Source of the DNA: Ruditapes philippinarum
Taxonomy: Eukaryota
DNA length: 64,000 nt
NCBI RefSeq assembly: GCF_026571515.1
Contig: NW_026861555.1
Location: 124,001 to 188,000, forward strand
Direction of reading: 5' to 3'
The notes beneath the pieces are model-generated. The model saw only the letters and a list, made by a program, of their open reading frames with translations. It was not told where the DNA came from and did no database searches. This document shows positions 6,701 through 61,760 of the stretch, piece after piece (position 1 is the first letter of the stretch; every line of letters starts with the position of its first letter). The translations under genes were made by a program, and so were the position numbers.

Positions 6701-9700
6701 CTCTAAAAAGTAAAATAAAAACGGAAGCATATGAACGGAATCTTTTTTATACTTTTTTCACGACAAAAAAGGAACGAAATCGAAATTTACGTAGAGAATG
6801 TTCGTGTTTTTCTCTTTAAATACATGTTTTTTTTTTCATTGAGTGGTATGAAAATAAATATTTCATGAATTGCGGTAGCCACGAGTGAAATATGATAATT
6901 TTCCTGCCACAAGATGAAAACAAATCATGTATTTATAGAAAAAACTTGAAAATTCTGTTTATTATATAAATTAGTCTTTTATTTGTCATTACAATTTGAA
7001 AGATTTTCCATAAATTCTGTGTACTGGCAGAATTTAAAAGAAAGTAGACCAGCAAGACACCAGCAAAATACGGAAAAAGTGTTTCACTGCAGTGAAAAAT
7101 AAATTTTGACAGTGAAAATACGAAAAATGAAAATACGCATTTTATTACATCAATTTATCATTTATAATTATATAATAAAAATAAATATTTCAGTAACATA
7201 AACATACTCTCTTTTAACAAAAAGAAACATGTCTTATATTTTGCCCGTTTTAGTAATAATTGTCAATAATCTAAAATTATATTGAAAACATAAAATGTTT
7301 GCAGTTTTAACTTAATAAAAACATTTACGTACTGTGCCAAGATAACAAGATGTCCATGTCTACGTTTTTCGCAGCAACATGTATCTGTGGTTGTTGTTGG
7401 AACAGAGCTTGTTGTAAAGGATGTCGTTGTTGTAGTTAAAGTAGTAGTAATTGTAGACGTAGATGATGTTGTTGTCGGTGTTGTTGTTAAAGTAGTAGAA
7501 GATGTTGTTGAAGTAGTTGAAGATGAAGTTGACGTTGTAGTTGATGAGGTAGAAGAAGATGTTACTGATGTAGTTGAAGATGTAGTTGACGTCGAAGTTG
7601 TTGAGGTAGAAGATGTAGTTGAAGTAGTTGAAGATGTTGTTGACGTCGAAGTTGTTGAGGAAGTAGAAGATGTTGTTGATGTAGTTGAAGATGTTGTTGA
7701 CGTCGAAGTTGTTGAGGAAGTAGAGGATGTTGTTGATGTAGTTGAAGATGTAGTTGACGTTGAAGTGGTTGAGGTAGAAGAAGATGTAGTTGAAGTAGTT
7801 GAAGATGTTGTTGACGTCGAAGTTGTTGAGGAAGTAGAGGATGTTGTTGATGTAGTTGAAGATGTAGTTGTCGTCGAAGTTGTTGAGGTAGAAGAAGATG
7901 TAGTTAAAGTAGTTGAAGATGTTGTTGACGTCGAAGTTGTTGAGGAAGTAGAGGATGTTGTTGATGTAGTTGAAGATGTAGTTGACGTTGAAGTTGTTGA
8001 AGTAGTAGAAGGTGTAGTTGACGTCAAAGTTGTTGAGGATGTGGTTGATGTTGTTGATGCAGTTGAAGATGTAGTTGACGTTGAAGTTGTTGAAGTAGTA
8101 GAAGATGTAGTTGAAGATGTTGTTGATGTCGAAGTTGTTGAGGAAGTAGATGATGTTGATGTAGTTGAAGATGTAGTTGACGTCGAAGTTGTTGAAGTAC
8201 TAGGTGATGTTGTTGAAGTAGTTAAAGATGAAGTTGACGTCGAAGTTGTTGAAGTGGTAGTAGGTGTTGTTGAAGTAGTCACAGATGTAGTTGACGTTAA
8301 AGTTGTTGACGTAGTAGAAGAAGTTGTTGAAGAAGTAGAAGATGTTGTTGATGTAGTTGAAGATGAAGTCGTTGATGTTTTAGCAGAGGTTGATGTGGTG
8401 GAGGATGAAGAAAGTGTTGAACTTGTTGATATAGTTGTGGTTGTAGTTATCTGGAATAAAGATTTAAGAAATTGGTATATACATTTTAGTTGCATGTTTA
8501 GAGTACTATTGAAAAGTTTATTTAGTTTTACGTATTTTCATTCTCTAATTCAAACTTTTATCATCAAAATGTATCATATTGTTTGCATATTGAAGTAATA
8601 ATAGAGACTAAACATTCATTACTACCTTTGATATTTAAAAAAAACTTTGAAAGAAAACACCGTTAAGTTCGTAAAAACGGAAATGGCATATTTACTAACA
8701 GAATCTTAAATATGAGTAAACTATTTTCATTTATATGCGCTTTTTTTTTATAATTTCCGAGAAATCATCTTTCATTTTATTTTGGCAATTAGCATACTTT
8801 CATTAAGATATTGTTCATTTTTCAAAATATATTGTTTTAAATATTTAATCAATGATACATGCGTTTTAAGTGGATAATGATAAAATTGTGGTGGTACAGA
8901 GCATATAAATTATCAAGAATTACAAAGTTAGACTATGAAATATCTTTTGTATATTCAACCTTTTCGAGGTAAGAGTATTTATAGGCATACAATGTATGTA
9001 TACATTGCACTTCCAGAAAATATTCTAACGGTGCATTTTAAGAAGCATCAAAAAGCAAATAGAATCTAGCCGGAATAAACAATACAATGTTCTACCCTGT
9101 TAAAAATGCATAGTTAGCCTAATAAAGATCTGTTCATATAATTTTAGAATAACCTATATCAGTGTCAATTGTAAGTTTAAATCCTTTATTTGTCTGCGAT
9201 GTCATTCTTTTAAAAAACAATAAAAAGGAAATAAAACATTTTTCCCCAGACATTGCGGTTACATTAACTTTAAGAAGTATTATTTCATAGGACACTAAAA
9301 CCCATCGAAATCATGCATAGATCTGTAGAAAAGTTTAATTTACAAATCATAATTATAAGTTGTGACAAGTTATGTCGTTGAAAACGTTTTCATATGAAAC
9401 CGCAACATATTCAGGGACTTTGATTAAAAATGTTTACATTCAATAAAGTTAATCCAGCCACATAACAAATAAGAAAATCACTAATGAAATTATATCAACC
9501 AAAAACAAATTACCTGTATAATAGATAGAGAAGCAGAAGACAACGAAGCTGGAAAGAATGATGATCCTGTGACTGGAAACATTGTTGAGGATATAAACAT
9601 TGTACTTTGTTTCGGTTTAGTAGTTGTTGTTGTCTCGGGAGCTGATGTAGTTGAGCTAGATGTTCTTTTAGATGTCGAAGAGCCTGAAGTTGGTTTGGTT

Positions 9701-12700
9701 GATGTAAACGTACTTGGTGATGTGATGCGGGAACTCCGCCTCGTCGTGATAACGGGCAATGTAGGTGTTGTGAAGTCAGTTGAATAAAATCTTGATGTAA
9801 CAGGAACTATATCAGTTGTTAAAGTTGAATAAAAGGATGTGGTTGTCTGAAAAAATAAATTGTAAAATTCAATAAAAGCGTTAAAATCTCTCCAATATAT
9901 TTTTTTTAAAAGGTAAAATAAATTTAAATAGTGACAAAAAGTCTTTATAAATACTATGTTTTCCTTATTTTTTAGTTTACAATCATACAACCCTTTTCAA
10001 AAACAATAGTAAGATAAAAAGGTAGATCTTCCTCTATGCCTTTAGGCCAATCTCAAATGCAAATTCTGTCGTAACTTTACGTTGATGTCATAAGTGATTT
10101 TATTATTCAGTAGCTTTGTAGAGTAGCTTTGTGAAAATGACTGAATGTTTGACCTACGATTACCAAAATTCAAAAACTTAAGATAACGTTTTTTAAAGAT
10201 ATTTTGTGAAAATGGCTGCTGATTTAGAGTTTTAGTTAAAAGAAAAAAATCATAATTTAATATTTATTATAAACAATTCTTTTAAATTTCGTTAAAACTT
10301 GCATTACATACACCAGCAACGTTAAACTAATATTCGCTTAACATTTAGGAAAATTTCAGAAGATGCACTTGAATAGTCTGCATATGCTCTATAACATAAT
10401 TTTACTTCACTTCATTCTGCGGTCCTAATGTCACTGTTATTATAAATGTAACAACATTAAAAAACATTTGAATAGGAGATAAATGGGGAACAAATTCAAA
10501 TTATAGTTAAAACATATGCATTCAAACTTATTTTTCATAAAAAATAATAATAAAAATATAATTTTAATAACACTGCTTCTGCTCATGGTTGAGATAAAAT
10601 GACATACATACCCGTATTGGTGATAGACTTGCAGTTTCCGGTCTTGGAGCCATCGATGTAGCAGTGGAAACTTAAAAAGATTTAAAATTATTGATGCATT
10701 TGATAAAGAGACTTTAAAGAAAGCCAAAATACGTCTGCAAAATATATTAGATTCAATTACCGCTTATACATTAACATAAAATAACTGAGATTTTATTTAT
10801 CATACATTTAGGCATTTATAAATATTTTCTCGAACGTTTCACAAGATATATTTTAAAAGAAATATTATCATTTATGAATGACTATAACTTACATGTAGAA
10901 ATTAGCGTTGGTTCAATTGTTGATGTGAATGGTTCTCCAGTTACTGTTTCAATGGCGGTTATTGTTTGAGATGAAGTAACAGTTGAGCTACTTTTTGATG
11001 TTTCTGGTGTCTCTTTTGAAGTTGCTTGTGAGATAGTAGTTGAAGATAAAGTTGACAAAAATTTTGTAGGTTCTGTTGATGCAATAATTGTAGTAAACTT
11101 CGATGTACTAAAGACAGTAGGTTTAAACGTACTTGTAACAGTTGCAGACGTGGTTGTTGTTTTATCTTCGGTACTACTTTTATCGGTTATAAAAGATGTG
11201 TACTTAACTGAAGTTTTTTCAAAAGTAGAAAATGTTGTTGATAGAATACTTTGTGTACCATTTTCCGTTGTAGATACCTCTATTGGAGTGCTCCTTTTTG
11301 TAAATTTCATAGTAGTGCTTTCCGGACTGGTAAATATCGATGGTTTTGAACTGCCAGATACCGTTTTTGTAACAGCTGTCATTGTTGTTGTCACAGTGAA
11401 AGGAAGCTCTGTTAAAGTGGATCCTTCAATTGCTGTACTTATTTCAGGAGAACTAAGTTTAGTCGACCGTATCCTGCTTGATGTAGTTTCGATTACTGTG
11501 GTTGTTGTTGTGGATATCTCAGGTGTAAAAATCGATGTTACAACAGGGGTACTGAACACAGATGATTTAACACTACTCGTTTTTGTAATATTTGAAGTTG
11601 TCGCTGCTGTTGTTGTGGTTGTTTCAGCTACGACAGAAGTAGAATCAGTAAAGGTTGAAGTATATACGTTTATACTTGTTCTAGGGGAGCTTATGTCAGT
11701 TAGTTGTAACGTGCTTGATTTAGGTTCAAGTGTTGTTTTAACGGATATGTAATCAGAGGTTACATTCGTCGTTACGATAGGTGTGCTAAATTCAGTTGGG
11801 CTTAAACTGCTTGATTTAGATTTAAATGATGTCGTTGTCAAAATCGTTTTAGTAATAACACTCGATGTTACGATTGGTGTACTAAATACTGATGAAGTTG
11901 TACTACTAGCTTCTGTTTTAGTAAACTTCGTAGTACTTGTTTCACTACTATTAGTAGGAGGTTCGGTAATTAAGGAAGTATATAAATTTGTGATTAATTT
12001 AGATGTAAAATTCTCCGTAGTTCGTGAAGTACTTGATTTAGATTCAATTGTTGTTTTCACGGAAATAATATCAGTAGCAGGAGAACTGTATACCGATGGT
12101 TCAAAACTACTTGTTTCCGTTATGTTCACATTTGTTATTGTTGTTGTTGTTAGAGTTGTTTTAGCTTTAGGTTCAGTAGAAAAATATATGGTTCTGCTAA
12201 CTTCAAGTGGGCTAGTTTCAGTCGTTGGGAAAGAGCTAATATTAGACAGAATGGTAGTTTTTCCTATTGTCGATGTTAATTCTGTAAGGACTGTGAATTT
12301 ACTAATAGGACTACCTTTCATGAAAGGGCTGGATTCTGTCGAAGTGCTTGGTTTGGTTTCAAAACGAGTTGTCGTATTTGATGTCGGCTTTGCAGAAACA
12401 GTTTCTGTTGAACTGTATCTGATTGAACTTATTTCTGGTGAAATGCCTTCTGTTGGCGTCAATGTCCTTTTAGAAACTTTTGTGATTGTTACAGTTATAT
12501 CAGAAGTATATTCGGTTGTTTCAAATTTATTAGTTGAAGGTTCAGCAGAAATCGACGAATATATGTTTGTACTTACTTTATGTAAGGTAGTGTCAGTTGG
12601 TCTTATAGTACTTGATTTAGATTCCATGGTTGTTCTTATGGATATATTTTTAGAGGTTACAATTGACGTTACTATAGGTGTACTAAATATTGATGGTACA

Positions 12701-15700
12701 AAAGTACTTGATTCAATTTTTGTTGCAACTATTGTTGTTGACGTTGTCGTTGTTATTGTAGATGTACCTGCTTCGGTAGAAGAGTATATGATTTTGCTTG
12801 TGTCTGGTGAGCTTAAACTACTTAATTCTGTTTTAATAACATCCGATGTTGTTGTTTTAAGATTAATTGTTGTAGGTTTAGAAAAAGTAGAAGTTATAAT
12901 GTGTGTGCTACTAACACTAGGTGGGCTTATTTCAGTAGGTGGTACCGTGCTTGATTTATATTCAGAAGTGGCAACACGTGTGCTGAAATCTGATGGTTTG
13001 AAAGTACTTGATTTAATCTTGGTTGAAATGTTTGTTGTTGAAGCAGGTAAGAACGTTGACTTGATGATAGGTGTTCCTTTATTGCCGGTAGTTTGGTTAT
13101 ATATTTTCGTTAATTTTAAATCCATTTGTACTTTTATTCAGTTAAAATTAAAGGGCGGCGTACTTGTTTTTGGTTTTAAAGCTGCTTAAAACCCAGTCGA
13201 TTAAAAACTATTTTTTTTTGTAGAAGTCCAAAAAATATGTTGAAAATTTAAATATAAAGAGGTTTGTTATTGGGTGTTTAAACATTGATTTTTTCACTTT
13301 TTGAATTTAGCGAAATAGAAGCGTTTCTTTATAAAAAATATTTTCAAAGTCGAAACTTAAAATGTGTTGACTCAAAGGAAGTTGTTATTTTGGAATTGTT
13401 TTCTGATGGTACAAATGTGAATAAAGATGTACGCATAGGAGTCGTTGAACTGAAATCAGATGAAGATATTCCAATTTCTGTTGTTAAAACAGACGACTTG
13501 CTAATAAGTGTTTCTCTTTTCCTGGAAATAGTTGAATCTGTTGTTGAAAATGTGATCGTAGATTCATTATGAGTAGAGCTATACCTTAAAGTTGATATTC
13601 TTGTACTAAAGACTGTTGATTTTATACTTTTTGTTGTCAAAGAAGTTCTTCCAGTAGTGGATTGCTCAACAGTTGTTATTTGAGAACTGACGCGTGTTGG
13701 AATAAAGGTGGACGATTTTCCAATCTCCGTTGTTGAAAAGGGAATAATGGTCGTACTGATTACAGACGTTTCTTTTTCGCCTGTGGTTGACTGTGTTTCT
13801 ATAAATGATATCGTAGATTCAATATTTGTCGAACTATAACTAGATTTCAAAGTGCTTATTTGAGTTGGTATAAAACTGCTTTTTGATGATGGAACAGATT
13901 CAGTAATTGTTGAGGAATCAAACTGTGTAGATTTTAAAGAACTAGTAAATTGTGAACTGGGGATAGTTGGTATTGAAGATTCTGAAAGTGTCGTCAACGA
14001 AGTATATTCAGTTGATTGTATAATATCTGTTGTTGTTGAAGATTCAAATAGCGTCGACTCAAAGGTTGAAATCATTCGAGAACTGTAACTTGTTGGTACA
14101 GATGTGAATGATGTTATTTCCGGAGTCGATGACCTTAAATCGGTCGATGGCATTTCAATCTCTGTGGTTGAAACGGGGAGACGAGTTGACTTGCTAATAG
14201 GTGTTCCTTTTTCGCCTGTAGTAACATCTGTTGATATAGATATTATCGTAGATTCAAATCCAGTGGATCCGTAGCTAAACGAACTAGGTTTCAAAGTACT
14301 GATTTGGGTCGGTATTAAACTGCTTTGTGATGATGGAACAAATGGAGTAATTGTAGAAGATTCAAACTGTGTAGATTTTAAAGAACTAGTAAATTTTGAA
14401 CTGGAGATAGTTGGTATTGAAGATTCTGAAAGTGTCGTCAACGAAGTATATTCAGTTGATTGTATAATATCAGTTGTTGTTGTTGAAGATTCAAATAGCG
14501 TCGTCTCAAAGGTTGAAATCATTCGAGAACTGTAACTTGTTGGTAAAGATGTGAATGATGTTATTTCCATAGTCGAAGATCTTAAATCGGTCGATGACAT
14601 TTCAATCTCTGTGGTTGAAATGGGGAGACGAGTTGACTTGCTAATAGGTGTTCCTTTTTCGCCTGTAGTAACACCTGTTGATATAGATATTATCGTAGAT
14701 TCAAATCCAGTGGATCCGTAGCTAGACGAACTAGGTTTCAAAGTGCTTATTTGGGTCGGTATAAAACTGCTTCCTGACGATGGCACAAATTCAGTTATTG
14801 TAGAAGATTCAAACAGCGTAGATTTTAAAGAACTAGTTAATTGTGAACTGGAGATAGTTGGTATTGAAGATTCTGAAAATGTCGTCAACGAAGTATATTC
14901 AGTTGATTGTATAATATCAGTTGTTGTTGAAGATTTAAATAGCGTCGACTCAAAGGTTGAAATCATTCGAGAACTGTAACTTGTTGGTACAGATGTGAAT
15001 GATGTTATTTCCGGAGTCGATGATCTTAAATCGGTCGATGACTTTTTAATCTCTGTGGTTGAAATGGGGAGACGAGTTGACTTGCTAATAATTGTTCCTT
15101 TCTCGCCTGTAGTACCATCTGTTGATATAGACATTATCGTAGATTCAAATTCAGTGGATCCATAGCTAGACGAACTAGGTTTCAAAGTGCTTATTTGGGT
15201 CGGTATAAAACTGCTTCCTGACGATGGCACAAATTCAGTTATTGTAGAAGATTCAAACAGCGTAGATTTTAAAGAACTAGTTAATTGTGAACTGGAGATA
15301 GTTGGTATTGAAGATTCTGAAAATGTCGTCAACGAAGTATATTCAGTTGATTGTATAATATCAGTTGTTGTTGAAGATTCAAATAGCGTCGACTCAAATG
15401 TTGAAATCCTTTGAGAACTGTAACTTGTTGGTACAGATGTGAATGATGTTATTTCCGGAGTTGATGATCTTAAATCGGTCGATGACATTTCAATCTCTGT
15501 GGTTGAAATGGGGAGGCGAGTTGACTTGCTAACAGGTGTTCCTTTTTCGCCTGTAGTAACATCTGTTGATATAGACATTATCGTAGATTCAAATTCAGTG
15601 GATCCGTAGCTAGATAAACTAGATTTCAAAGTGCTTATTTGGGTCGGTATAAAACTGCTTTTTGATGATGGAACAAATTCAGTAATTGTAGAAGATTCAA

Positions 15701-18700
15701 ACTGTGTAGATTTTAAAGAACTAGTAAATTGTGAGCTGGAGATAGTTGGTATGGTAGATTCTGAAAGTGTCGTCAACGAAGTATATTCAGTTGATTGTAT
15801 AATATCAGTTGTTGTTGAAGATTCAAATAGCGTCGACACAAAGGTTGAAATCATTCGAGAACTGTAACTTGTTGGAACAGATGTGAATGATGTTATTTCC
15901 GGAGTCGATGATCTTAAATCGGTCGAGGACTTTTCAATCTCTGTGGTTGAAATGGGAAGACGTGTTGACTCGCTAATAGATGTTCCTTTCTCGCCTGTAG
16001 TAACATCTGTTGATATAGACATTATCGTAGATTCAAATTCAGTAGATCCGTAGCTAGACAAACTAGATTTCAAAGTGCTGATTTGGGTCGGTATAAAACT
16101 GCTTTTTGATGATGGAACAAATTCAGTTATTGTAGAAGATTCAAACTGAGTAGATTTTAAAGTACTAGTAAATTGTGAACTGGAGATAGTTGGAATTGAA
16201 GATTCTGAAAGTGTCGTCAACGAAGTATATTCAGTTGATTGTATAATATCAGTTGTTGTTGAAGATTCAAATAGCGTCGACTCATAGGTTGAAATCATTC
16301 GAGAACTGTAACTTGTTGGTACAGATGTGAATGATGTTATGTCAGGAGTCGATGATCTTAAATCGGTCGATGACATTTCAATCTCTGTGGTTGAAATGGG
16401 GAGACGAGTTGACTTGCTAATAGGTGTTCCTTTCTCGCCTGTAGTCACATCTGTTGATATAGATATTATCGTAGATTCAATTCCAGTGGATCCGTAGCTA
16501 GACAAACTAGATTTTAAAGTGCTTATTTGGGTCGGTATAAAACTGCTTTCTGTTGATGGCACAATTTCAGTTATTGTAGAAGATTCAAACAGCGTAGATT
16601 TTAAAGAACTAGTTAATTGTGAACTGGAGATAGTTGGTATTGAAGATTCTGAAAATGTCGTCAACGAAGTATATTCAGTTGATTGCATAATATCAGTTGT
16701 TGTTGAAGATTCAAATAGCGTCGACTCAAAGGTTGAAATCATTTGAGAACTGTAACTTGTTGGTACAGATGTAAATGATGTTATTTCCGGAGTTGATGAT
16801 CTTAAATCGGTCGATGACATTTCAATCTCTGTGGTTGAAATGGGGAGACGAGTTGACTTGCTAATAGGTGTTCCTTTTTCGCCTGTAGTCACATCTGTTG
16901 ATATAGACATTATCGTAGATTCAAATCCAGTGGATCCGTAGCTAGATAAACTAGATTTCAAAGTGCTTATTTGGGTCGGTATAAAACTGCTTTTTGATGA
17001 TGGAACAAATTCAGTAATTGTAGAAGATTCAAACTGTGTAGATTTTAAAGAACTAGTAAATTGTGAGCTGGAGATAGTTGGTATGGAAGATTCTGAAAGT
17101 GTCGTCAACGAAGTATATTCAGTTGATTGTATAATATCAGTTGTTGTTGAAGATTCAAATAGCGTCGACTCAAAGGTTGAAATCATTCGAGAACTGTAAC
17201 TTGTTGGTACAGATGTGAATGATGTTATTTCCGGAGTCGATGATCTTAAATCGGTCGATGACATTTCAATCTCTGTGGTTGAAATGGGGAGACGAGTTGA
17301 CTTGCTAATAGGTGTTCCTTTTTCGCCTGTAGTCACATCTGTTGATATAGACATTATCGTAGATTCAAATTCAGTTGATCCGTAGCTAGATAAAGTAGAA
17401 TTCAAAGTACTCATGTGCGTCGGTATAAAGCTACTCTTTGATGATGAATCAAATTCGGTCATTGTAGAAGATTCAAACTGCGTAGATTTCAAAGAGCTAG
17501 TGAATTGTGAACTGGAAATGGTTGGTATTGACGTTTCTGAAAGTGTCGTCATAGAAATATATTTTGTAGATTGTGTCGTATAATTTACTGAGGAAGTTTC
17601 AAATGGTGTCGATTCGAAGGAAGTTGTCACTTGAGAACTGAAACTTCTTGGAATGGATGCTGAGGATTGCATACTTTTAGGAGTTGTTGATATGACACCA
17701 GTCGATGATATTTCAAATCCTGTTGTTGAAATTGGAAGAATTGTTGACTTGAAAGTTGTGCTTTTCTCAGAGCTAAACTGTGTCGATCTGTAGGTACTGG
17801 CTATTATTTTAGTGTATGTAGAGGATGCGATTGATTGTGTTACTTCAGGACCAAACGTAGATTTATATATAGGTGACCCTTTTCTAAACAATTGTGATGA
17901 TGACAATAATGGCTGCATTGTTGTAGTCGAGTTCTCTAATGAAGTAATGGTTGATATGTCTTTTAAAGAACTTGATATGGAACTGAAACCACTGGTCCTT
18001 GTCACTGAAAAATAAAAATTTGACACATCTTTAATAGTCGACGTTTTACCTAATTCAAATTAAATTTCAACTACAGGATATAATTATTTGATTTATGCTT
18101 CTTGTTAGTAATGTCAAGACACCTGAAAACGTACACAAACGTCTACAAATTGTAATGGACAATATTTAAAGTATGCATACATTTAATTGTACATTTTTAT
18201 GCAATTCATTTGAGTTTGACTTGAATAAAAGTATTTGCAATATATTGAATTTATCTGGTGTTGTATATGTGATATTATTACCAAAAAGTGATATCATTGT
18301 ATATTTTTATGTATATATTAGCTAGTACTGTTTATCGTGAATCAACCTCATTATGTAATTTTCGAATAAAAAAGTATCGTCAAACGAGGAAAAGGGCATA
18401 ATTCTATCATTTGTATGCCTAATAATTTAATCACATAAAAATCCTTAAACCGAATAGGGATATGTAAGGAAGGGGTAGAATTTATCAAAGGAAGTAATGA
18501 AGACGTGCAGGTAAGTAGAAAATAAAACAGAATGGAAAAACTCCTAACCAAAAAGGAAAAAAAGCCTTGGTCCCGAAGAAAAGATAGAAAACTGTGAAAT
18601 AGGTTTAAATTAAGCACGAAATATTTGTGTCTCGAGCAAATAAATCCTTTTAATACCAATGTCACTTCTTGTGGAATATATTATGTTTGTAGTCGACACT

Positions 18701-21700
18701 TCAAAAAGGATAGTTGTTGTGCCAGAAGTGTATGTTGACATTACACTACTTTGACTTCTAACAGTTGTATTTGGTACGTCTGAAGCAAAAATATCATTTA
18801 ATTTAAAATCAGAAATCTTTTGTTCAAGGCTAATATTTTGACATATAGAAGAAGATGTATTTACTTACATTACATAAAGAATGTGCCTAAAACAACAACT
18901 CTTAGAATGTTATAAAGCTTAAACAAATTTTAGTAATTATTAGATTATACATTATGTATTTTGATTTTTTAACTGCTCGATTGTTAACAATAACGAATCA
19001 AATACAATTTCATTATTGAATTGTTACCGAATTGAAAATTGACTCAAAGGTGATGTATTATTAACGACAAAGACGCCGATAAAAAAAACTAGTCATATAT
19101 TCTCACCTGTACTTAATTGAATTGTACTGTTATGAATTATTGTTGATGAGCTTTCCCGTGACGTTGAACTTGCTACTTGAATACTTGATCCAGTATACAA
19201 TGTTGATAATGATGATGTTAAATTAGTTGTCAAAAAAGATGTTATTTCTGTCAATAATGATGAGATATCTGTTGCTATCGATGACGTAGTATCAGTTGGT
19301 AATAATGATGTAGCAACTGTAGTAAATGCTAGTGTTATATTTGTTGTTAAAGATGTACCAACTGTGGATAATGTAGATGTTACATCTCTTGATAAAGATG
19401 ATGTAATATCTGTTGAAGATGACGATGAAATAACAGATAATGATGTTAAGTCTGTTGGTAATGATGATGGTACGTTTGTTGATAATGACGATATAACCCC
19501 TGTTGGCAACGATGTTACCTCTGTTGGTAATGGTGATGTAACATCCGTTGGTAAAGATGATGTAACATTTGTTGTTAAGGACGAAGAAAACCTTGTTAAC
19601 AATGAGGTTACCTCTGTTGGTAATGTTGACGTAACATTTGTTGGAAATATTGACGATACCTCTGTTTGTATTGTCGAAGTCACCACTCTTTCAAATGATG
19701 TTACATCTGTGGGTAACGATGATGTTACAATTGTTGATATTGGTGTTTTGTTTGTTGATAAAAATGAAGTAACTTTGGATGTTTCATCAGTTGGTAATGA
19801 TGAAGTAATCCCTGATGGCAATGATGTTTCATCTGTTGGAAATGATGAAGAAGAATCTGTTGGTAATGTTGATGTTACGCCAGTTGGTACGGACGAAGTA
19901 ATCCCTGATGACAATGATGTTTCATCTGTTGGTAATGGTGAAGTAATCCCTGATGGCAATGATGTTTCATCTGTTGGAAATGATGAAGAGGTATCTGTTG
20001 GTAATGTTGATGTTACGTCTGTTGGTAATGACGAAGTAATCCCTGATGGCAATGATGTTTCATCTGTTGGTAATGGTGAAGAAGAATCTGTTGGTAATGT
20101 TGATGTTACGCTTGTTGGTACGGACGAAGAAACTCCGGTAGGCAATGATGTTAAGTCTGTTAATAAAGATGATGTTACGTCTGTTTGTAATGATGATGTT
20201 AAATCCGTTGGTATTGAAGAAGAAACCCCTGTTGGCAAAGATGTTACGTCTGTCGGTAATGACGAAGTAACCCTTGATGGCAATGATGTTTCATCTGTTG
20301 GTATTGATGTTGCTTTTGTTGGTAATGTTAATGTTACGTCTGTTGGCAATGACGAAGTCGACCCTGATGACAATGATGTTTCATCTGTTGGTAATAATGA
20401 AGAAGCATCTGTTGGTAATGATGATGTTACGTCTGTTGGTAAGGACGAAGACATCCCCGTTGGTAATGATGTTTCATCTGTTGGTAAAGATGTTGTTATA
20501 TCTGTTGGTACTGATGACGCTACGTCAGTTGGTAGGGAAGAAGAAATTCCGGTAGGCAATGATGTTAAATTTGTAAATAAAGATGATGTTACGTCCGTTG
20601 GTAATGACGATGTTACGTCTGTTGGTAATGACGATGTAACTCCTGTTGGTAATGATGTTAATTCTGACGATGAAGCATCTGTAGGAAATGAAGAAGGTAC
20701 ATCAGTTGACAATGATGTGATGTCCATTGGTAATGATGAAGTAGTATTCGTTGGTATTGATGATGCGCTATCTGTGTGTAATAGTGAGCAAACATGTATT
20801 ATAAATAATGATGCTATACGCATGTATGTTGACAATAAAAACATGTGGAAATTTTGTTTGAGCGTAAGCATTTCAAGTATGTCAGTTATCGTTACCATAT
20901 AGATTGTTACAGGTATGCCATAATCATTTCATACATAGAATTATTACATGTAATGGTAATCAGTGCATTATCAATTAAAATGAATGCACAAAAAACCCCA
21001 ATGTTTTATTTGATATCTATACAACGTCAGTTTGCTAACAGATGTCAGTTTATGTGTTTTCCCTCTTGGTTAAATTTTATACTAATCGTTTACACAATAC
21101 CTAGATTGGTACGATCTTAGATATTATTAAACATATTATTTTATAAAGATTAAAATATACTTACTACTTGTTACAACACTAGGAATGGAACTGATTGAAC
21201 TTATCCCAGTTGTTTTGGTTACGGCTGATGTTAAATTCGAAACAGTAAATGTCGAAATATCTGTACTTAACATGCTTGAACTTGAAATTAATGTTGTACT
21301 TAATCGAACGTTTGTTGACTCTGACGGAACGTTACTACTTTGAGAAATAGAATAAGATAATGTTGAAATCACAGTACTTGGTTGTTTCGAACTGAAAGGA
21401 GTAGATGTAACTGGTCTATGTGAAGTTGAATTTGACAATGTTATAGTTGAAATCAAAGAACTTGGTACAGGTGAACTTGAATATAATATTGATGAACTAA
21501 ATGTTGAAGTCGAATCGTCGGTGGTCACAGTTAAAATGCTTGTTTTTGGTGAAGTTACAATCGACACGGATACAGTTGAAATGTCGGTACTTAAGAAAGA
21601 CGAACTGGGATAAGTTGTTAGTGAAAAAACGGTCGATGTTCTAGCAGACGAACCTGCTGTAGTCATAGTTGAAACGTTCGTTCCTCCTGAAGTTAAATCT

Positions 21701-24700
21701 GTCACTAATGTTGATGAAATTGAAATGTTTGTCTGCGTTGAACCTAAAACGGTTGTTGGTAAAACAAAAGTCGAAGTTCTTATAGATGAACCTGTTGTTT
21801 CAGATAAAAAGTGTGTACTTTGAGAAGTAATGTTCGACACAAACAATGTTGAAACAAGTGTACTAGAAAACAATGAGCTTGAAAATTCTGTCGGAGTAGA
21901 AGTTGATGTTTCTACTCTACTAGTTTTTGATGACAATTCTGTTGAAACAATGTACGGTGTTGATGATTCAAGTAGTGTTGAACTTTGTGAAATACTCGTT
22001 ACAGAAGATAGCTCAGAAGAAAATCTTCTGATAGTAGTACTTAAAGTTGATATTATCATTGTCGACTTTTCTGAAAATAAATGTGTGTTACTCGACGTTA
22101 GAATTTCAGTTCAAACGGGCACACTTAGTAAAAAACTGGTACCCGTTGTGTCCAAAGAAAATGTATTAGCTGAAAGACTTGAGAAGAAACTTTATTTCTA
22201 ACGGGAAAATGGAAATTGTTTGATTCCAAAAGAGCTGGAATAAATTATTTAAATCAGTTAGCATATGCAAAGTGTTAAAATTAAATAAACTGTATTAGAT
22301 TAAAGGTAATACAGCATGCATTTAATAAATGTTAGAATTGTTAACACAGATAAAGAGAGAACATTTGGATTCAGGAAAACAAACTTTTAGCATAATAAAC
22401 TAGGAACTGTTTAGATTTTGTTTCTAAATGTGAGTCGAAATGTTAGAGTTACATAGAAACGAGAAGAAAAACAATTATTGTTCGAGTCTAAATCTTACCA
22501 GTACTTGGTGGTTTAGAAGACGGTGAAATAAATGTTGATGTAAATTTGGAATCAGTAGTAAGTTTTGTACCTACGAAAAGAAAGAAATAACTATTTGACT
22601 TAAGTATTTGGCGTGAATATTTATGTTTCGACATCTTGTTTGAACTTTTTTAAAATAACACGCTCATATTTTTTTAAGGAAGAGGATAGTGTTATTCAAT
22701 TATGACAATAATGCGATTGCGTTTCGTTTCCATTGTTCAGTTGCTTCCATGCTTTAATTTATCTCTCAAATATCATTTCAATAGCAGTTGGTTTATTGTC
22801 TAAAGAAAAATAATCCATCAACAATATCAAAAAATAAATGTCATTTATAATTGCTTATGTGCACATTTTCATTGTATTTCTAAGAAAGGTGAATTAAAAA
22901 AAAACATGTTGAAAGTTGTAGAACGAAAATAAGAATACTTAAAGAAATTGAGAAAAAGTGGTAAACAAAATACCATCTTAAATTTGTTTTTGATATTGAT
23001 ACAAAACATTGTCAGTATATTATAACTATATGGTCTTATAAATTCATCTGGACTTTATAATTATATACTTGACTTTATACAATTAAACACGAATTTTGAG
23101 AAGTGTCGCATTTTGGAACTAGTGCACTTACCTTTGCTTGGCACCTCAGAAGATTGTTTGCTTGAAATTGAAGATACATCTGAATCAGTAGTAAATTCTG
23201 TACCTGCAATGTCAAAATATGATGTTATCATTCCCTACTTATCATATCCCTCACATTGCTCAATTAGTATAACATACTCCACTTTATTTTAACTTGTAAC
23301 TTCCCCTTCTTGCCTTTACGGGTTGAGGCATCAGAATTACAGCCACCAATTAGCCCTGCGTGATCGTACGAGGCGGCTTAATGGGTTTGAATTATTGAAG
23401 TGTATGCATCTCTTAGCTCCAGCAGGTGAGATGATTTTGACCCCTGATGTTGCTTAAAGTTTTAACACCCTAGGTTAGAAAATATCATCTCTCCTGTTTC
23501 GGTGCCATTTGACCTACATTGTGTTTCTGCGCAGTAAAACCAAACCAAAGTAAAACAAATTAATTTGTATATGTCCAAGGAAATTGTAAGATTTTTGCTA
23601 GCTACTATAACAAAGATAGAACCGCAAGACTTGAGTGATGATTGTACAGTATTTGCAGTTTGAATTTGCCTATTTTATTTCTTTGATATAAATGTTAGCT
23701 AAACATTAACAAAATTATATTTACAAAGTTGTTCAACCGATCAACAGTTACTATGTATATATTCCATAACCGGATACAGGAGGGCTTATAGCCTGAACTC
23801 AATTGGAAAACAAGCAGTCTACAGTCGCATAATATCGCTGACAAAAAGTTATAGATGTGATGAACTTTAATATTTCAACACATCATCACACAGTGTATGA
23901 TCACACATACATTTTTTATCAATCAGAATGAAAGATCGTGTAACGTTCAAAATTAACTAATAGAATCTACTTCTTGGATTATAATGGCATGATGTGTTAA
24001 TTAGTTTAATAAATAAGCTGATATTATTTCTAGAATTACGGTTTACTGATTATCGGGAAAAACCTTTTTACTCGATTCACAGGTTAAACATTTACAAATA
24101 TCTCATAATAAAAATATGCATGGCTATTTGGTAAAATATTTACCTAACGATGTTGAAATTTCTGTAGTAGATGCACCAGATACTGCACGTGTTTCACTTG
24201 TGCTATGTAACAAAGTCGATGACAATAGCGTACTTGAAAATTTATAGGTGGAACTTAAATTGTCTGTCATTGCGGTAGAGATTGGAGACGATAATCCTTC
24301 AGTTGAAATTTCTGTCACAATACTTGGTTTATGTGTAGATATGGACAACAAAGTTGTGCTTGGCTTAAAAGTGTTCGAAAACGTTGGAGATAGAGATGCA
24401 CTTTCAGCCGATGAGACTGGTATTTCAGTTGTTGAAAACGTTACAGGTGGTTTCGATGAAGAAAAAGATGAAATGTCTAATGTGATTTCTGTTGAATTTT
24501 GTGACAATGACGTAGAATAAGTTGATGTAAATGAGGTGACTGGTGAAACTGAAGATGTAAATTTTGAAGAAGAAGCAAATGAAATATCAGTTGGCAACCT
24601 AGTTGACTCTGTTGATGTTAAAATTGAAGATGGCAGCGACTCTCTTGCTGTAGACGTAAATGTTTTTAAAGTTGAAATTACACTTGGCAACACAGATGAT

Positions 24701-27700
24701 GAAGTAAATAGATTTGTAATTGATGATGGCAATACTGATGAAGATATCAAAATAGATGACGATATTAAAGTTGAAGATGATGATAAAATTGAAGATGTTG
24801 ATGATATTATCGTTGATGACATAACTGTTGATGACGACAATGATGATGATGAAAAAGCTGTTGATGATGACAGTGATGACGATGATATTATTGTTGATGA
24901 TGACAGTGATGATGATGAAAAAATTGTTGATGATGAAAGTGATGATGATGAAATTACTGTTGATGATGACAGTGATGATGATGAAATAATTGTTGATGAT
25001 GACAGTGATGACGATGATATTATTGTTGATGATGACAGTGATGACGATGATATTATTGTTGATGATGACAGTGATGACGATGATATTATTGTTGATGAAG
25101 ATAGTGATGACGATGAAATAATAGTTGATGATGATAATGATGATGAAGGGGATGATATAACAGTCGAGGAAAAAAGAGTGGATGATGCAACTGATGTTGG
25201 TGTTGATGACACCACACTTGATGATGACGATTGACACGCATCATTTATGACACTGAAAATAGAAAGATATTATCTTCTTTGCTTTGTTTATTAAATTTCA
25301 CCTTATGATAATAAAACAAGGAATAGATAAGTTACGTATGATGTTAAACACTTTTTACCATTAGAAATATTTAATAAGTTTATAAATCAAAGAATTAATT
25401 ATAAAAACAGTAAGATTACAAGTTATTTTTGCATAATAATAATATGTTCATGAAATATGTATTTATTCAACTTACTCCGCCAAGATAATCAATGTGCCTA
25501 TTTTTCTGTCTCGACATTTTCTAAAAAAATGAAATATCTACATGTTAAAACTGAGTACAATTTGTTTATAAAAAATAAAGCTAAAAAGATTCATATACCT
25601 AAAAAAGATGTTTCCTCAGAGGAATAATGCAACTTTTTTATGCATTAACATCTGCAGAAGCCCGCGAACTTAATAAAATCCCTCGGCCTGAGGGCTCAGG
25701 CTTTAAATACGTCCTCTTGCTCCAGCAGATGTTAATGCACGAAATAGGTACCTAAGCGTCACTCTTGCATATAAGTATACGTCCTATTCCGTGATTCAAC
25801 GCTTTATATATGTTTTTTTGTTTGTATAAAGAAGCCATTTATTAAAATATGTTAGTGCGATATAGCTGACAGGTATGTTTTTTTTTTTTAAATAAAACAA
25901 CCTGGGCAGTAATTCATGAAAGCTATTTCTACATGGCACACTGAATCAAGCATATAAGAACGCGCAAATTTTATCTGTTAATTTATTTTTTTCCTCTCCG
26001 TAAAGTTTATACTTAGATGGGTAGTAACTATGGTAACTGTTGTTATGCAAGAATAATGATATTATAAACAGCTATGCGTATCCAAGTTTATTAAAGTTAA
26101 ATTAGTTTTTTAGGATAAATGCATAAAAGTAGTCAAAGGCTTCGTTGTATTCTTATGATAAACTAAACTAAAAGGAAATTGTTACTGTCTTTAATACATT
26201 AGAAATCTGTATTAGAAAAAAGTAAATTATTAAATGACATGAATAAATAAATGGCATCAAATGTTACAAATGTAATAGCAGCTTGTCTGCTTTAAAAAAA
26301 AAAAGACCTCACCAATTGTACAGTCTAAATGGTACATTTTAAATTTAAAAAAATGATTTGTTCAGTGGAAAATAATGCATACCTTGGACATTTTGTTACA
26401 ACTCTGAAAAACAAAAACAAACATAAATGGGTAATTAGTTACGTTTAAAATCTGCTAACGGTATGTTTTTTAACATACACAATTTGAAAACTTAAATATG
26501 ACTTCTCGCCATATTAAATGAATCTTCATTGCATACATAAATTAAGAACTAATAAGTTACTCTAATTTATTATTACCAAAATGTAAAAATGATCACAATT
26601 TTGAAACAGATTAGAGTTGGTTTACTACCTGGTACCATTTTCAATTAAAAGCATCATAACTATTACATTAAAGTAGAATATGTGTGTATTGTCATCAATA
26701 CTTTTCTTAAAGTGGCATTATGGTATATAGTGAGTGAACGGGTGAAGATCAAAATAAGTTTTCATTTTGCCATAATTCCTTTTAATTTAATGATAAGTTC
26801 ACATAAACAATAAATAACGCACAGATTCAAACGAAATTTCTGTAAATAATCATTTACCATCCATGCTTAGTATATAAAAAGAGTGGGGCAGTCGTTGCAG
26901 ATCCTAAACATTTTCCAAAATCAACTGTTGGTCAAAGACCATTTTGACAGTCAATCTTTTGAAATATAAAGTCAATTCAGCTCAAATTAAATATGAAAAA
27001 ATGAGTATAATGGCACTTGAAGTTTGAATCATATTATAACAATTATCCAGCAGTATTTGACTATAACACAAGAAATAGACTTCATTGACAAGAAATGATA
27101 AATTGATATAAAGAAAAGTAATCAAAGGAACCTTGGGCACTGATATTTTATTTACACAATTAATACACTAAGAGATTGAAATACAATAAACAAATAACAT
27201 TTCTTCTTAACATAATTTTAAGAAAAAGAAGAAGACAATGTTATTTAACTTATACATTTACATGTATCTCGTTATACATCAACTAGTAGTACATATAAAC
27301 GGTTGGTATTCAAATGAAAGAGAATCATTAATGTTTGAGTTTATAGTTTATACATAATGGAGAATAGGCTCTAATAAACATGAATTAACAGCAATTTTTC
27401 ACCAATAAAGTGTCTAACAGTGAATGTAATGAACATTGTTATAGTCTTAAAGTCTAGGATATGAATTCAATAAATCATTTCTTTTCATATTGGCTAAATA
27501 AATAAATTTGCTAAGATTGTTAAGAACTGATTTATTGTTTGACTTAAGCATTTCTATGAATTTGTACATACTGGGTCTATGATAAAAATAACGTTTAATT
27601 AATCGAATTCTTAAATCATGGTAAACACTGCATATAAGAATCATATCTACCTGTTTGAATTCTAAGATTATGCAAAGAAATTCTTAAACGCTTCTTAATA

Positions 27701-30700
27701 CTACTCCTTAGATAATTAGTTTTGATAGTAATCAAATAATTTTCCAAATTTTCCACCGTTTTTAGATGAATATAAAGAATGTTTAAAACATTATTATTGT
27801 TTAAATCTGCTTACTATTTTTTGATTAAAACAATCCAAAAAACTCTTTGTTTAAAATGTACCATAAATGCATTTATTTTAATTTCATTTGGTTACAAAAA
27901 TACATATGCAAAACCATAATTTTCTAATAATATTTTAACATTGTATGTTCATCTTTGACACCATTTAAACATTGTTTTAATGAGTTGTTATATATCGCAT
28001 CTAAAATGATATTGTTTGTATTTGAAATTTTCAACCAATATTTTATCATTTGAACATATCTGTTTTTTTTTTATAAAGGGTTTCTCCCTAATTCTCCGTA
28101 TACAGCACTATTGCTGGAACTTTTATTAACGCCTAAAATATATTTGCAAAATTTGAGATGTACAGTTTCAATATCTTTTGACTTAGAAAATCGTCATACA
28201 GGACATGCATAATTCAGAATAGAGCCAACAAAAGAATCAAATAATTGTAAAGAAATATATGGTGATAATTTACCTTATTAATATTACATTGTAGAACGTT
28301 ACATGCTTTTAAGACTTTTCCAATAATATATTGATTATGTAAAACAAATGAACCCGTATAATTTAAAACTACTCCTAAAGAAGTGAAATCATTAACTATG
28401 TCAAATTGTTTATCGTTCTGTCTCAAGGGGTCCCTTTTTCTAAATATAACGAGTTTTGTTTTTGAAGTATTAACTTGTAAACCGCAGTATGTACAATATT
28501 CATATAATAAGTTTAGACTGGATTGTAAATCTTCTATAGAATGTCCTACTAACACCATATCATCAGCAAAGAGTAAAATAATGATACAAAAATTGACAAA
28601 CCACAATTTATTCTGTTTTTGTAAATATAGTTCTAAGTCCTCTAAAAAAAGTGCAAACATAACCGGAGAATTATTTAGGCCTTGACGAAGACCAATTGAA
28701 ATTTAAAAAAAGTTTCAGAATGTGTTGCAATAATTAAAACATGATTTAACAACAGTATATATACATAGCCTGAAACATTTTTAAAATTCTTCAATCAAAA
28801 CCCATGTTAAACAATTTGAGCCATAAAGCGTTTCTATAAACAGAGTCAAATGCTTTCGTGAGATCTATAAAAGCGCATGGCAGTCGCATTTTTTTAGTTA
28901 AAACATGTTCTATCAAGTTGTGTAAAACAAATGTTTTACAGAAAAGAACAGAACAGAACATAATTTTATTAATAAATCGTATGTAAAAAGCATATTAATT
29001 AAACAATAATATTTTACATGCATGCATAAAAGTATGTAATGAGAGCATGAGAGAAATGAATCAATGTATCGAAGCATCACTACTTCATGGTGTTATATAT
29101 TACTTATCATTTTTACAATGGACTTACTCCGGAATTAAAAATAATTTAGGTCTTCCCGGCTGATCTTGTGATACATATACAAATATTTCTTACAGTTACA
29201 GCCTCGAAAATAAGCGCAACATGTTGACTAATCTCTTGTGAACTGTAGTGCCCCGTGAAGCTTTAACGCTAAAAAATGTGTTTGTACCAGGGGGTTAGCT
29301 TGGGGAAAACCATATTTACCCAGTTAAGAGTAAAATCAATGACATAAAGTACATACTCAGCTAGGAGAATGAGATGTCCAATTGGTCTGTTATCCTTCTT
29401 GCAATTTTTTCTTTTATTTGATTGCTCATTGCTGAAAAGAAAACAAATACAATTATAGAATTCCTTGACATTTTTGTCGAAATTCAGATACAAAATTTAG
29501 CATTGTTTTATTTACACTAAAACGATTTAAAAGACAACTAAAAAGGGGTTTCGAAGTTTCCTTATCATCCATATTAAAACGGTCTTTTGTTTCTTCACTG
29601 AGTGCTTATAGGCGAAAGGGCAACACCCGATATTTCAAATTCTGTTTAAACTTGTAACAATAATATAAAGATAAGTTGGTAAATACTTCAAATTAATGTT
29701 GATAAAGTACATATAAATTGAACATACCTTCGTGTCTGAACTGTTTTGTTTTGTGTATCAGTATTGTTACTTATATTTCTGAAAACAATAAAGACATAGA
29801 CACTGGAAACCTATGTTGTAACATTTGAGAATATACAATATTCATCAAGACGTTAAATAAAATTCAAGAATATAGTTATTTAATTGTAAATGCAGTAAAA
29901 ATGTATGTTATAGATATGTGGGAACAGAAAATGTACTTTGTTTGAATTTAAGTTGTCTAATTAAAGCAAGGTTTTTCTTCTCCGTAAGTCTACATCTAAA
30001 AGCCTAAGGCCTATTTGATAAGTAACAGGCAACATATTTTATGTAATACTCCCACACGTGCGGTTTCATTTTAAAATATTTTATATAGATCGAAAGAATT
30101 CACGTCCTGTCTGCGTGTTACTTGTTTTCTATTTGTTTTAGTAATAGAAAGAGCATCGAAACACGAGGCTATCTGATTTGTACGAGAGGACACCTGTACT
30201 CTTGTTAACGCACTGTGCAGGTAACTCTGACACATTTTCAACGGAAAGGTCCCCAAATTTTGATACAATAATACTTACGACTGGTTTTTACTAATAACAG
30301 AAGTTATTCCTGTACCGTTTACGAAAAGTATGAAGTCTTTGGCATTGTGTACTCTGAAGCAGAAATAATAATGATAAAAACACAGGTAATAAATTAAAAC
30401 TGTCACAGTTATAGATATGTGTATATGATATAAGCATAGCAGAATCTAACACACATACTCAGGAATGTTTGCTGTTAACAGTTACAACTTTGAAAATAAT
30501 TACGCAACAGGATCATTAATCCATTGTGAACAGTTAAATGTATCCACTGTGAAGCTAAAACGGCAAACGTTTGTTTGTATCCCCGGACCAGCTTGATAAA
30601 AACCCACATTTGCCGAGTTCCGGAAAACATCTGTTAATACTAATTAGAACTTTTTTGTAAACCTGAATATTTAGTTTCTTTTTATCTATTGAAAACTATT

Positions 30701-54251: not shown

Positions 54252-54490
54252 ATGTGCCGTGTCATGACAAAACCAACATAATGGGTTTGCGACCAGCATA
54301 GATCCAGACCAGCCTGCGCTTCCGCACAGTCTGATCAGGATCCATGCTGTTTGCTATCAGTTTCTCTACTTGTAATAGAGTTGATAAGCGAACAGCATGG
54401 ATCCTGATCAGACTGCGCGGATGCGCAGGCTGGTCTGGATCCATGCTGGTCGCAAACCCATTTTGTTGGTTTTGTCATGACACGGCTCAT
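54252..54490. mobile_element. Palindromic MITE family A, complete
   Basis: Matches the family; core in the opposite orientation to the 33729 copy. Confidence 0.9.
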
Positions 54491-54629
54491 TAATGTTCTG
54501 TACCTGTTTGTAATACACTGTGTTCCTGTGATAAGTGATGATAATTTTTTTTGCATGTTATATGGCCCAGTATATATATTAATGCCTTGAAAGCCAGGTA
54601 ATGCTATCCAAGGCACTGAGGTATTTTAT

Positions 54630-57829: not shown

Positions 57830-58056
57830 TATCTATTAGCTTTTGTTTTTGATTTCTTTATTGTCTATTGTTAAACAATTTTGTCTGTTCATACATTCCA
57901 TATGTGCATAATATAACGTCTTATAACATTTAACACATGATAGATAGAAAAATAAAAAATATTAGATATAAATAGATGTTTGGTGTCTACTGTGCTCCCT
58001 TTCCGGTGGTCCTGTGTTGCTGAGTTGTGTTGTGGGGATGCATTCAGTTATTACTT

Positions 58057-58262
58057 GTTTGCGACCAGCATAGATCCAGACCAGCCTGCGCATCCGCGCA
58101 GTCTGATCAGGATCCATGCTGTTCGCTATCAGTTTCTCTACTTGTAATAGGGTTGGTAAGTGAACAGCATGGATCCTGATCAGACCGCGCGGATGCGCAG
58201 GCTGGTCTGGATTAATGCTGGTCGCAAACCCATTATGTTGGTTTTGTCGTGACACGGCTCAT
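58057..58262. mobile_element. MITE family A, left-truncated
   Basis: GTTTGCGACCAGCA...GACACGGCTCAT. Confidence 0.88.
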
Positions 58263-60817: not shown

Positions 60818-61760
60818 TACAAGGGTCATTCAATGAGTTAAGCTGCTGAATTAAAATTTTGTTACTGCTACGTTTTATAAAAATGTTTCTATTTCATAAC
60901 TACAAAGTAGTTTCCCTCTACCTGGATGTATTTTTGTAATCTTTCTGTCCAGTTTCGAAAACCTGATAATCAATCTTCTTTTGGAATCTGTTACAGACAC
61001 CGATTAACTGCACTGCCAAGGAAATTGGATGTATATCTTTTACCAAAAAGCATTTTATGCCTTGGAAACAGAAAGAAGTTGCAGGGACATAAATCAGGAG
61101 TGAAATGCAGATGGATTAACATTTTAACATTTTCAGACGCCAAGAAAGACTGAACAAGCTTGCTTTTGTAAGAGGAAGCATTGTCATGTGTAAGATGAAC
61201 TCTTGACATCCTTTGCTTCGATGCGTCTTTTTGTAAAGTGCTTCCTATCTTTCTAGATTGTTTTCCAGAGACCGTGTGACCAGAAAGCCAAGGCAGACGA
61301 GCGACTTGTCCACTGGAGTTTATTAATTTGCATACAATAACTTCTTTGTACTTTCTTTTGACAATGCAGGGTATTTTATATCTTTTCTCAACCATTGCTT
61401 GTTATCGGCCCTTCTTGAGGCTCAAACATATGCATCTTATTTTCAACACCTGTCAGCAAGTTAGAAATACCTGATTATCACAGTCGTGTGTTTTCAGAAG
61501 TTTTTTGGCATACTTCAGGCACTTTTTCTTTTCTCCCTTTGTTGCGCAAATGGGCAGAAGGTCAAAATTAAATAAATTCTGCCTTCTGGCAGGCCAATGC
61601 AACTGGCTATCTCCATAACGAACAATGGTGCACACGTTCAACTATAACCTTTCACAAGGGCAATATTTGAAATGATATCCAATGTTGTAGACATACCTGA
61701 ATGGTAGGCATCTTTGACAGACACCTTTACAGCTCTGAAAGCTTTGAAAGCTTTAAAAAC
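60818..61760 (-). mobile_element. Decayed mariner transposase relic
   Basis: HDNASSY and HFTPDLCPCNFFLFP resemble mariner HDNAxxH and HPPYSPDLAPxDFxLF; TIR-like TACAAGGGTCATTCAAT at 60818; frameshifts; far boundary uncertain. Confidence 0.8.

Follow-up and report, generated by a model that had tools for sequence, protein, structure and literature searches.

The window gene and its three module copies

We analysed a window of 64,000 nucleotides (nt) from Ruditapes philippinarum (contig NW_026861555.1, positions 124,001 to 188,000 of the forward strand); "the window" below means this whole stretch, and positions are counted from its first letter. Its minus strand carries a mucin-like gene whose protein has more than 4,100 residues, and three short motifs of the form R-x2-G-x-(hydrophobic)4-A are spliced coding parts of this one gene. 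The motifs are copies of a mini-module, about 20-25 residues long and not described before, which is divided by an intron. The three stretches had been pointed out in a first-pass annotation made from the letters alone, and in the window sequence they do lie on the minus strand at the positions given there. Copy 1 (29357-29431) reads N-C-K-K-D-N-R-P-I-G-H-L-I-L-L-A, copy 2 (25476-25520) reads K-C-R-D-R-K-I-G-T-L-I-I-L-A, and copy 3 (7333-7381) reads C-C-C-E-K-R-R-H-G-H-L-V-I-L-A. The copies end with two bases of a codon (GA, GA and CA), followed by a donor GTATGT, GTAAGT or GTACGT. Downstream acceptors with pyrimidine tracts complete the codons to E, D and Q, and the second halves then follow as VVTKC-P for copy 1, VINDAC-QSSSS (from 25252) for copy 2 and IINEIQ (from 6597) for copy 3. 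When G-x-L-x-x-L-A was searched loosely in six frames of the window, only one unrelated match was returned besides the three copies.

Two of the modules stand N-terminal and one C-terminal of a Ser/Thr-rich region, so that its borders are marked as the first-pass annotation had described. The region consists of eight minus-strand open segments from 25251 to 7335, with 20-42% serine, 15-51% threonine and 1-9% proline. It comes to about 4,090 residues, a number that is the sum of the open segments, the internal exon borders not being fixed by simple splice-site rules. This is close to the glycodomain of about 4,200 amino acids (aa) proposed before. Outside the modules only two cysteines occur in the region, both at segment edges (20790 and 10893), and these are probably intronic. 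After copy 3, the predicted last exon holds no cysteine and reaches a stop at 6507-6509, unless a possible donor after 6546 is used. The predicted junction of copy 3 is based on an acceptor in the right phase, on the match of IINE with the second half found across the family, and on the architecture of the paralogues, which likewise stop within a few residues of their last module. Downstream of the gene, no further Ser/Thr-rich frame occurs in the 10 kb past the window start. The exons and modules are collected in Table 1.

Table 1. Exons and modules of the mucin-like gene in the window, with the further module copies found in the genome.
Feature	Position	Strand	Description and evidence
Upstream coding exon	30279..30353	-	75 nt, phase 2 at both ends, translation VHNAKDFILFVNGTGITSVISKNQ; joint 29778>30279 in X1 contig
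Asn/Thr-rich linker exon, coding	29728..29778	-	51 nt, phase 2 at both ends; joints 29431>29728 and 29778>30279
Module 1 first half, exon	29357..29431	-	C, basic stretch, R-P-I-G-H-LILL-A, GA before GT donor; joints 26403>29357 and 29431>29728
Module 1 second half, 21-nt micro-exon	26383..26403	-	VVTKCP; joints 25520>26383 and 26403>29357 (X1 contig)
Module 2 first half, 45-nt exon	25476..25520	-	K-C-R-D-R-K-I-G-T-LIIL-A, GA before GT donor; joints 25252>25476 (X1, X2) and 25520>26383
Module 2 second half, start of first Ser/Thr-rich exon	25234..25252	-	VINDAC; joint 25252>25476, two runs
Ser/Thr-rich (mucin-like) region	7382..25233	-	eight open segments, about 4,090 aa summed
Module 3 first half, end of last Ser/Thr-rich exon	7333..7381	-	CCC-E-K-R-R-H-G-H-LVIL-A, CA before GT donor
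Predicted last exon, module 3 second half (IINEIQ...)	6507..6597	-	acceptor with pyrimidine tract, correct phase
Six further copies	contig C13168 near 768.69, 773.10, 779.19, 788.58, 789.60, 796.18 kb	+	profile search

Transcript evidence for the exon junctions

Are such small exons used in transcripts? RNA reads were examined over 25120-31100 of the window, and contigs were obtained from two runs of separate studies, here X1 and X2. The X1 contig, 777 nt long with a depth of 23.9, contains all five joints from 25252>25476 to 29778>30279 (Table 1), each with GT..AG borders on the minus strand, which show as CT..AC on the plus strand. The X2 contig contains the joint 25252>25476 as well. The five confirmed introns are all in phase 2 (5/5). 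This establishes the micro-exon, the two exons upstream of module 1 and the junctions of the first two copies. The phase-2 intron splitting the E, D or Q codon, which the first-pass annotation had claimed for all three copies, is thus confirmed by transcripts for the first two, and it is predicted for the third. The X1 contig reaches at least 326 nt further 5' than the most upstream exon of Table 1, onto DNA beyond 31100. Of the words sampled from 19501-29500, a fraction of 0.32 is present in run X1, which is about the exonic share. A retrocopy is unlikely, because genome-wide searches place the module halves only where a donor follows.

A candidate first exon at 42271-42519, with an ATG, a hydrophobic start and a phase-2 donor, was rejected; it sits in a dispersed repeat. 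The 2.95-kb intron that splits module 1 contains a fragment of a reverse transcriptase (RVT_1, E=2.6e-14) at 28217-28702 on the minus strand, so this intron took up a retroelement, and its splicing is undisturbed according to the X1 joints. At 30138-30186 and 26720-27119 the depth rises to hundreds to thousands in all four runs, one raw RNA-seq run included, and the reads exit on both sides into unlike sequence. These two places look like highly repeated transcribed elements in introns.

The module in the genome and in protein databases

The motif cannot be put down to chance, because a degenerate DNA pattern of the core and its donor gave 5 matches in the 1.4-Gb genome and 0 in a reversed control. 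Three of the five are in the window gene. With profiles of the first halves, nine copies in all were found in the genome, the three of the window and six on another contig, C13168 (Table 1), and a second profile search added none. In all six copies on C13168 two bases are followed by GTA or GTG, the same phase-2 donor. The window copies 1, 2 and 3 score 48.6, 26.6 and 52.2 bits against the family profile. Several weaker loci were not counted as copies: L001 on contig C5452 has a stop just upstream and no cysteine, the weak profile matches L018-L022 have no donor, and L034 and L035 reach only about 20 bits.

A profile of the nine first halves was then compared with 1.84 billion representative proteins, and only four matched: XP_060567791.1 and XP_060567795.1 from R. 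philippinarum, and XP_045195046.2 and XP_053402622.1 from Mercenaria mercenaria. Both species belong to the Veneridae. XP_060567791.1 is a protein of 202 aa with a clear signal peptide, three modules and Ser/Thr linkers, and it ends eleven residues after the third module. XP_060567795.1 has one module, and the two Mercenaria proteins have two each, in the order of module, Ser/Thr stretch and second module. Ser/Thr linkers of about 40-60 residues lie between the modules of the small paralogues. Word-based protein searches with XP_060567791.1 and XP_045195046.2 gave no new relatives, and the window gene's own product came up neither in the profile search nor when words of the first Ser/Thr exon were searched. 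Of the alignment columns that are invariant between the two genera, most are in the modules; the others are single Ser or Pro residues in the linkers.

True relatives of the window gene, with the same module core beside Ser/Thr-rich stretches, are the products of LOC132726486 (XP_060567790.1, XP_060567791.1 and XP_060567792.1), XP_060567795.1, and the two Mercenaria proteins. In the RefSeq exon maps on C13168 an exon border falls within the module at this same codon, and the four Ruditapes products share the phase-2 intron position with the window gene. Note that isoform X3 of LOC132726486 has a different last exon, which supplies another second half. Because the intron lies inside the module, any in-frame junction rebuilds the module and alternative last exons can swap its second half. 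The relatives differ from the window gene in being mostly 135-242 aa long and in keeping the canonical C-x2-CC...C arrangement. The window gene for its part has a Ser/Thr region of about 4,100 residues, two tandem N-terminal copies with one cysteine on each side of the intron, and a C-terminal copy lacking the closing cysteine. The labels of the LOC132726486 products, "mucin-2-like" or uncharacterised, are automatic, and no relative has been characterised. In the window gene and its paralogues alike, a module adjoins a Ser/Thr-rich stretch and the last module is near the C-terminus. The module marks a small mucin-like family of two venerid clams, in which it stands at the borders of Ser/Thr stretches. 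To this family the window gene belongs as a giant and divergent member, whose N-terminal copies, two in number, are degenerate and which has a single copy at the C-terminus.

One gene model on C13168 deserves a separate remark. At 796108-801870 on the plus strand (loci L007 and L027), the model of XP_060567795.1 (826 aa) stops inside the Ser/Thr region, which continues past this stop for about 1,100 residues in another frame. A frame change or an unrecognised intron has probably cut the model short. The genome profile search found no C-terminal module for this gene.

Sequence conservation, codon usage and known domains

The canonical form of the module is C-x2-CC-E-T-R-x2-G-x-(V/I/L)4-A-[E/D] before the intron and (V/I/L)2-x-[D/E]-x(0-2)-C after it. 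Across the family, full units can be written as C-x(0-5)-C-C-E-[T/F/K]-R-x-x-G-x-(V/I/L)4-A-[E/D/Q/R], followed after the intron by (V/I/L/F)2-x-x-(x)-C. In the alignment of the genomic copies R, G and A are invariant (9/9), and all nine have the phase-2 intron in the codon after the invariant Ala.

Is it the protein that is conserved, or the nucleotide sequence? The copies might hold nothing but a splicing signal at exon ends, with no protein module at all, and every copy does end exactly at a donor. Codon usage speaks otherwise. Between the window copies, 4-5 of the 10 core codons differ synonymously in each pair, which bears out the earlier remark that synonymous positions diverge while residues are kept. 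Over the 36 pairs of copies, 360 codon comparisons gave 118 synonymous differences, 67 identical codons and 175 amino-acid changes. The invariant Arg is written AGA, CGT, AGG and CGG in the nine copies and the invariant Ala GCT, GCG and GCA, and Leu is written CTC, TTG, CTT and CTA, so synonymous sites are saturated and yet R, G and A stay the same. Codon use that varies at fixed residues shows that selection acts on the protein. In addition, the second half on its separate exon is conserved too, and the protein motif is kept in Mercenaria. A nucleotide-level signal is therefore very improbable as the cause of the conservation.

Another explanation is that the motif is a fragment of a described domain, overlooked in searches with short exons. 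Pfam gave no family in the module exon halves, in the terminal exon or in the ten longest upstream minus-strand frames, and the upstream exon gave only a chance match of 12 bits; exon-sized queries are indeed too short for Pfam to score, so that intact spliced relatives make the more telling test. In the full-length spliced paralogues and orthologues with intact modules, Pfam found nothing relevant, and a PDB sequence search with these relatives returned only noise at E>1. In literature searches on mucin-like proteins of clams, and on the string CCETR, no relevant paper and no mention of the motif came up. In the ESM Atlas the single look-alike is a cluster of glycoprotein G of respiratory syncytial virus (RSV), with a score of 0.78 that is below the level that counts, and the likeness is probably compositional. 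That a known domain has been missed is thus hardly to be expected. The first-pass annotation had called the motif unrecognised, and this holds in Pfam and in the PDB sequences; the conservation in a second genus, Mercenaria, can be added to it.

The same searches concern the usual parts of mucins. No match to vWD, C8, TIL, CysD, cystine-knot or SEA was found by Pfam in the module exons, the frames or the intact relatives, in agreement with what was first reported for vWD, CysD, cystine knot and SEA. The set expected of a gel-forming mucin (vWD/C8/TIL at the N-terminus, a cystine knot at the C-terminus, and CysD) is accordingly unmatched in the exons and frames examined, the 5' exons being unlocated. 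Features of a membrane-tethered mucin (SEA and a transmembrane helix) are absent after copy 3, where 29 residues with no Pfam match and no hydrophobic run of about 20 residues are followed by the stop. Gene predictors and domain databases overlook the module, since its coding sequence is spread over exons that can be as small as 21 nt.

Cysteines of the module

The canonical module has four cysteines, three before and one after the intron (3+1). All three modules of XP_060567791.1 have this form, and so does the first module of each other family protein. In the window gene the numbers are 1+1, 1+1 and 3+0 for copies 1, 2 and 3. In the two N-terminal copies just the two cysteines on either side of the loop are left, C-x19-C in copy 1, where the micro-exon completes the loop, and C-x18-C in copy 2, and the other two were lost jointly. 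Three cysteines without the closing one are seen in the C-terminal copy of the window gene and in the last module of Mercenaria XP_053402622.1. If the disulfides are internal, namely a small staple and a loop-closing bond, it is to be expected that the two extra N-side cysteines are missing together and the bracketing pair is kept. The pattern therefore favours bonds within the module over free thiols.

Possible function of the module

What might such a module do? We suppose that disulfide-closed loops with beta-prone hydrophobic strands act as associative stickers, within or between chains, a proposal that we hold tentatively and at somewhat less than an even chance. Strand pairing within or between chains is the most likely role that we can name, with the same reservation. 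The last N-side cysteine would bond to the C-side cysteine and close a loop of 16-19 residues, and the loop would present a bare beta-prone hydrophobic strand beside a heavily O-glycosylated chain. The strands would then pair with one another within or between chains, and a polymer that is sticky only at its ends would give a reversible network, to which the three-Cys C-terminal copy may add an interchain disulfide. The 9-residue core is rich in Val and Ile, and by the crude measure of Chou and Fasman its mean propensity is 1.30 for beta strand vs 1.12 for helix. A partner surface is expected because a loop of about 20 residues cannot bury nine or ten consecutive hydrophobic residues.

The idea may be carried further. 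The module could be a minimal self-complementary end-sticker, a disulfide-stapled strand of 20 residues that pairs with its like and joins bottle-brush glycoproteins into a reversible or disulfide-locked network. In this narrow form the idea is rather unlikely. If it were true, it would give a mucus assembly independent of vWD, cystine-knot and CysD domains, which in the protein sets searched would belong to venerid clams only.

The first-pass annotation had suggested a polymerisation system that joins chains end to end, which in its covalent reading means that N- and C-terminal copies form interchain disulfides in place of vWD domains and the cystine knot. The Ser/Thr region does have modules at either end, with nearly all its cysteines in them, no canonical assembly domain was found by Pfam, and the C-terminal copy, like the last module of XP_053402622.1, has three cysteines and no closing one. 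On the other hand, canonical modules carry an even number of four cysteines and the N-terminal copies of the window keep a matched pair, as would suit closed loops that leave no thiol free. With their 135-242 aa, most members of the family are unlike what a dedicated system for giant polymers would predict. What stands of the earlier interpretation is a spliced and conserved coding module; the internal-disulfide pattern, with an odd cysteine in the C-terminal copy only, speaks against thiols that join chains. We regard covalent polymerisation as doubtful.

There is a third option, that the modules have no role in assembly and are self-contained structural caps or ligand sites, small disulfide nooses which mark the ends of glycosylated stretches. 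Such caps might bind a lectin, a metal or a receptor, or limit glycosylation or proteolysis. The four-Cys parity and the joint loss of two cysteines suggest closed loops, and in the small paralogues the modules are separated only by short linkers. A metal site could be imagined from H-G-H beside the Cys cluster in several copies; however, the His residues vary across copies. As a precedent, the central cystine noose of pneumovirus glycoprotein G, that of RSV among them, is a short four-Cys unit between two mucin-like regions. It differs from the clam module in that it is viral, has other Cys spacing and lacks a long hydrophobic strand. That strand is the main difficulty for a cap, since nine or ten consecutive hydrophobic residues would be left unburied by the loop, so that a partner surface is expected. 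A cap with any of these tasks is unlikely.

Several points should be noticed which weigh against the picture of a glycosylated chain with sticky ends. The sticker role is putative, and the disulfide pattern is deduced from Cys counts only. That the Ser/Thr region is O-glycosylated is an assumption based on its composition, in which there is little proline. The junction of copy 3 (7333>6597) is predicted only, and the signal peptide and 5' end of the window gene were not located. The small size of most family members makes a role specific to giant polymers unlikely. AlphaFold2 applied to XP_060567791.1 with a 5-row alignment gave a mean predicted local distance difference test (pLDDT) value of 31.7 and no usable fold. 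Nor did the modelling of module pairs suggested in the first-pass annotation bring an informative result: complex prediction with the modules of the paralogue XP_060567791.1 (residues 31-72, 96-137 and 161-202) ended at a score of 0.03, which is no answer and speaks neither for nor against pairing.

Comparison with known systems

Research on the mucus of invertebrates has centred on mucins of the vertebrate type, which have vWD and cystine-knot domains. In gel-forming mucins and in von Willebrand factor, with N-terminal vWD-C8-TIL units and a C-terminal cystine knot, Cys-bearing non-glycosylated units stand at both ends of a very long Ser/Thr-rich region, and this is the functional analogy that the first-pass annotation had drawn. 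Their assembly domains, however, have 70-400 residues, many disulfides and a known dimer or trimer chemistry, whereas the unit of the window gene has 20-25 residues and 2-4 cysteines, does not match them in sequence, and has a putative assembly role. CysD domains (Mucin2_WxxW) are also small hydrophobic Cys-containing islands in or beside glycosylated stretches, and they are thought to give non-covalent cross-links. A CysD domain has about 110 residues, ten cysteines and a WxxW motif; the clam module has none of these and no Pfam match. In spidroins, with their N- and C-terminal domains, and in mussel preCOLs, with their His-rich flanks, a huge low-complexity core is combined with small conserved end units that control assembly. 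These end domains are unrelated in sequence and fold and have at least 100 aa or bind metal, so that the likeness is an analogy only.

The window gene encodes a protein of more than 4,000 residues whose non-repetitive parts are only three tiny Cys-hydrophobic units, of a kind that another genus of clams has kept as well. If the proposed association is true, the module would be among the smallest known assembly tags for a glycopolymer, with a possible use in engineered mucin-like gels. If it is false, the module is still a conserved one that has not been described before.

Other elements in the window

The remaining features concern the surroundings of the gene. About 1.6 kb downstream of its predicted stop and on the same strand, 1488-4934 (-) is an intact-looking open frame of a long interspersed nuclear element (LINE), with 1,149 aa and the domains of an endonuclease (Exo_endo_phos) and a reverse transcriptase (RVT_1). 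A dispersed repeat, recognised by a peptide around MDPDQTARMRRLVW-H/Y-AGRK, has at least five copies in the window, at 831-965 (-), 42011-42205 (-), 47832-48095 (+), 54335-54616 (-) and 57962-58255 (-). More copies are found elsewhere, and the repeat is also present on C13168 near 790.7 and 793.6 kb. Toward the other end of the window, adjacent open frames at 62426-63346 (+) and 60991-61392 (-) have weak matches to NHL repeats of about 18 bits, just under the Pfam cut-off, and they may be exons of a TRIM/NHL-type gene. A fragment of a DDE_3 transposase adjoins these frames. Finally, tandem-repeat blocks with long open frames on both strands lie at 39569-39913 and 44139-44516, the second of which coincides with a negative dip of the GC skew at 44-46 kb.

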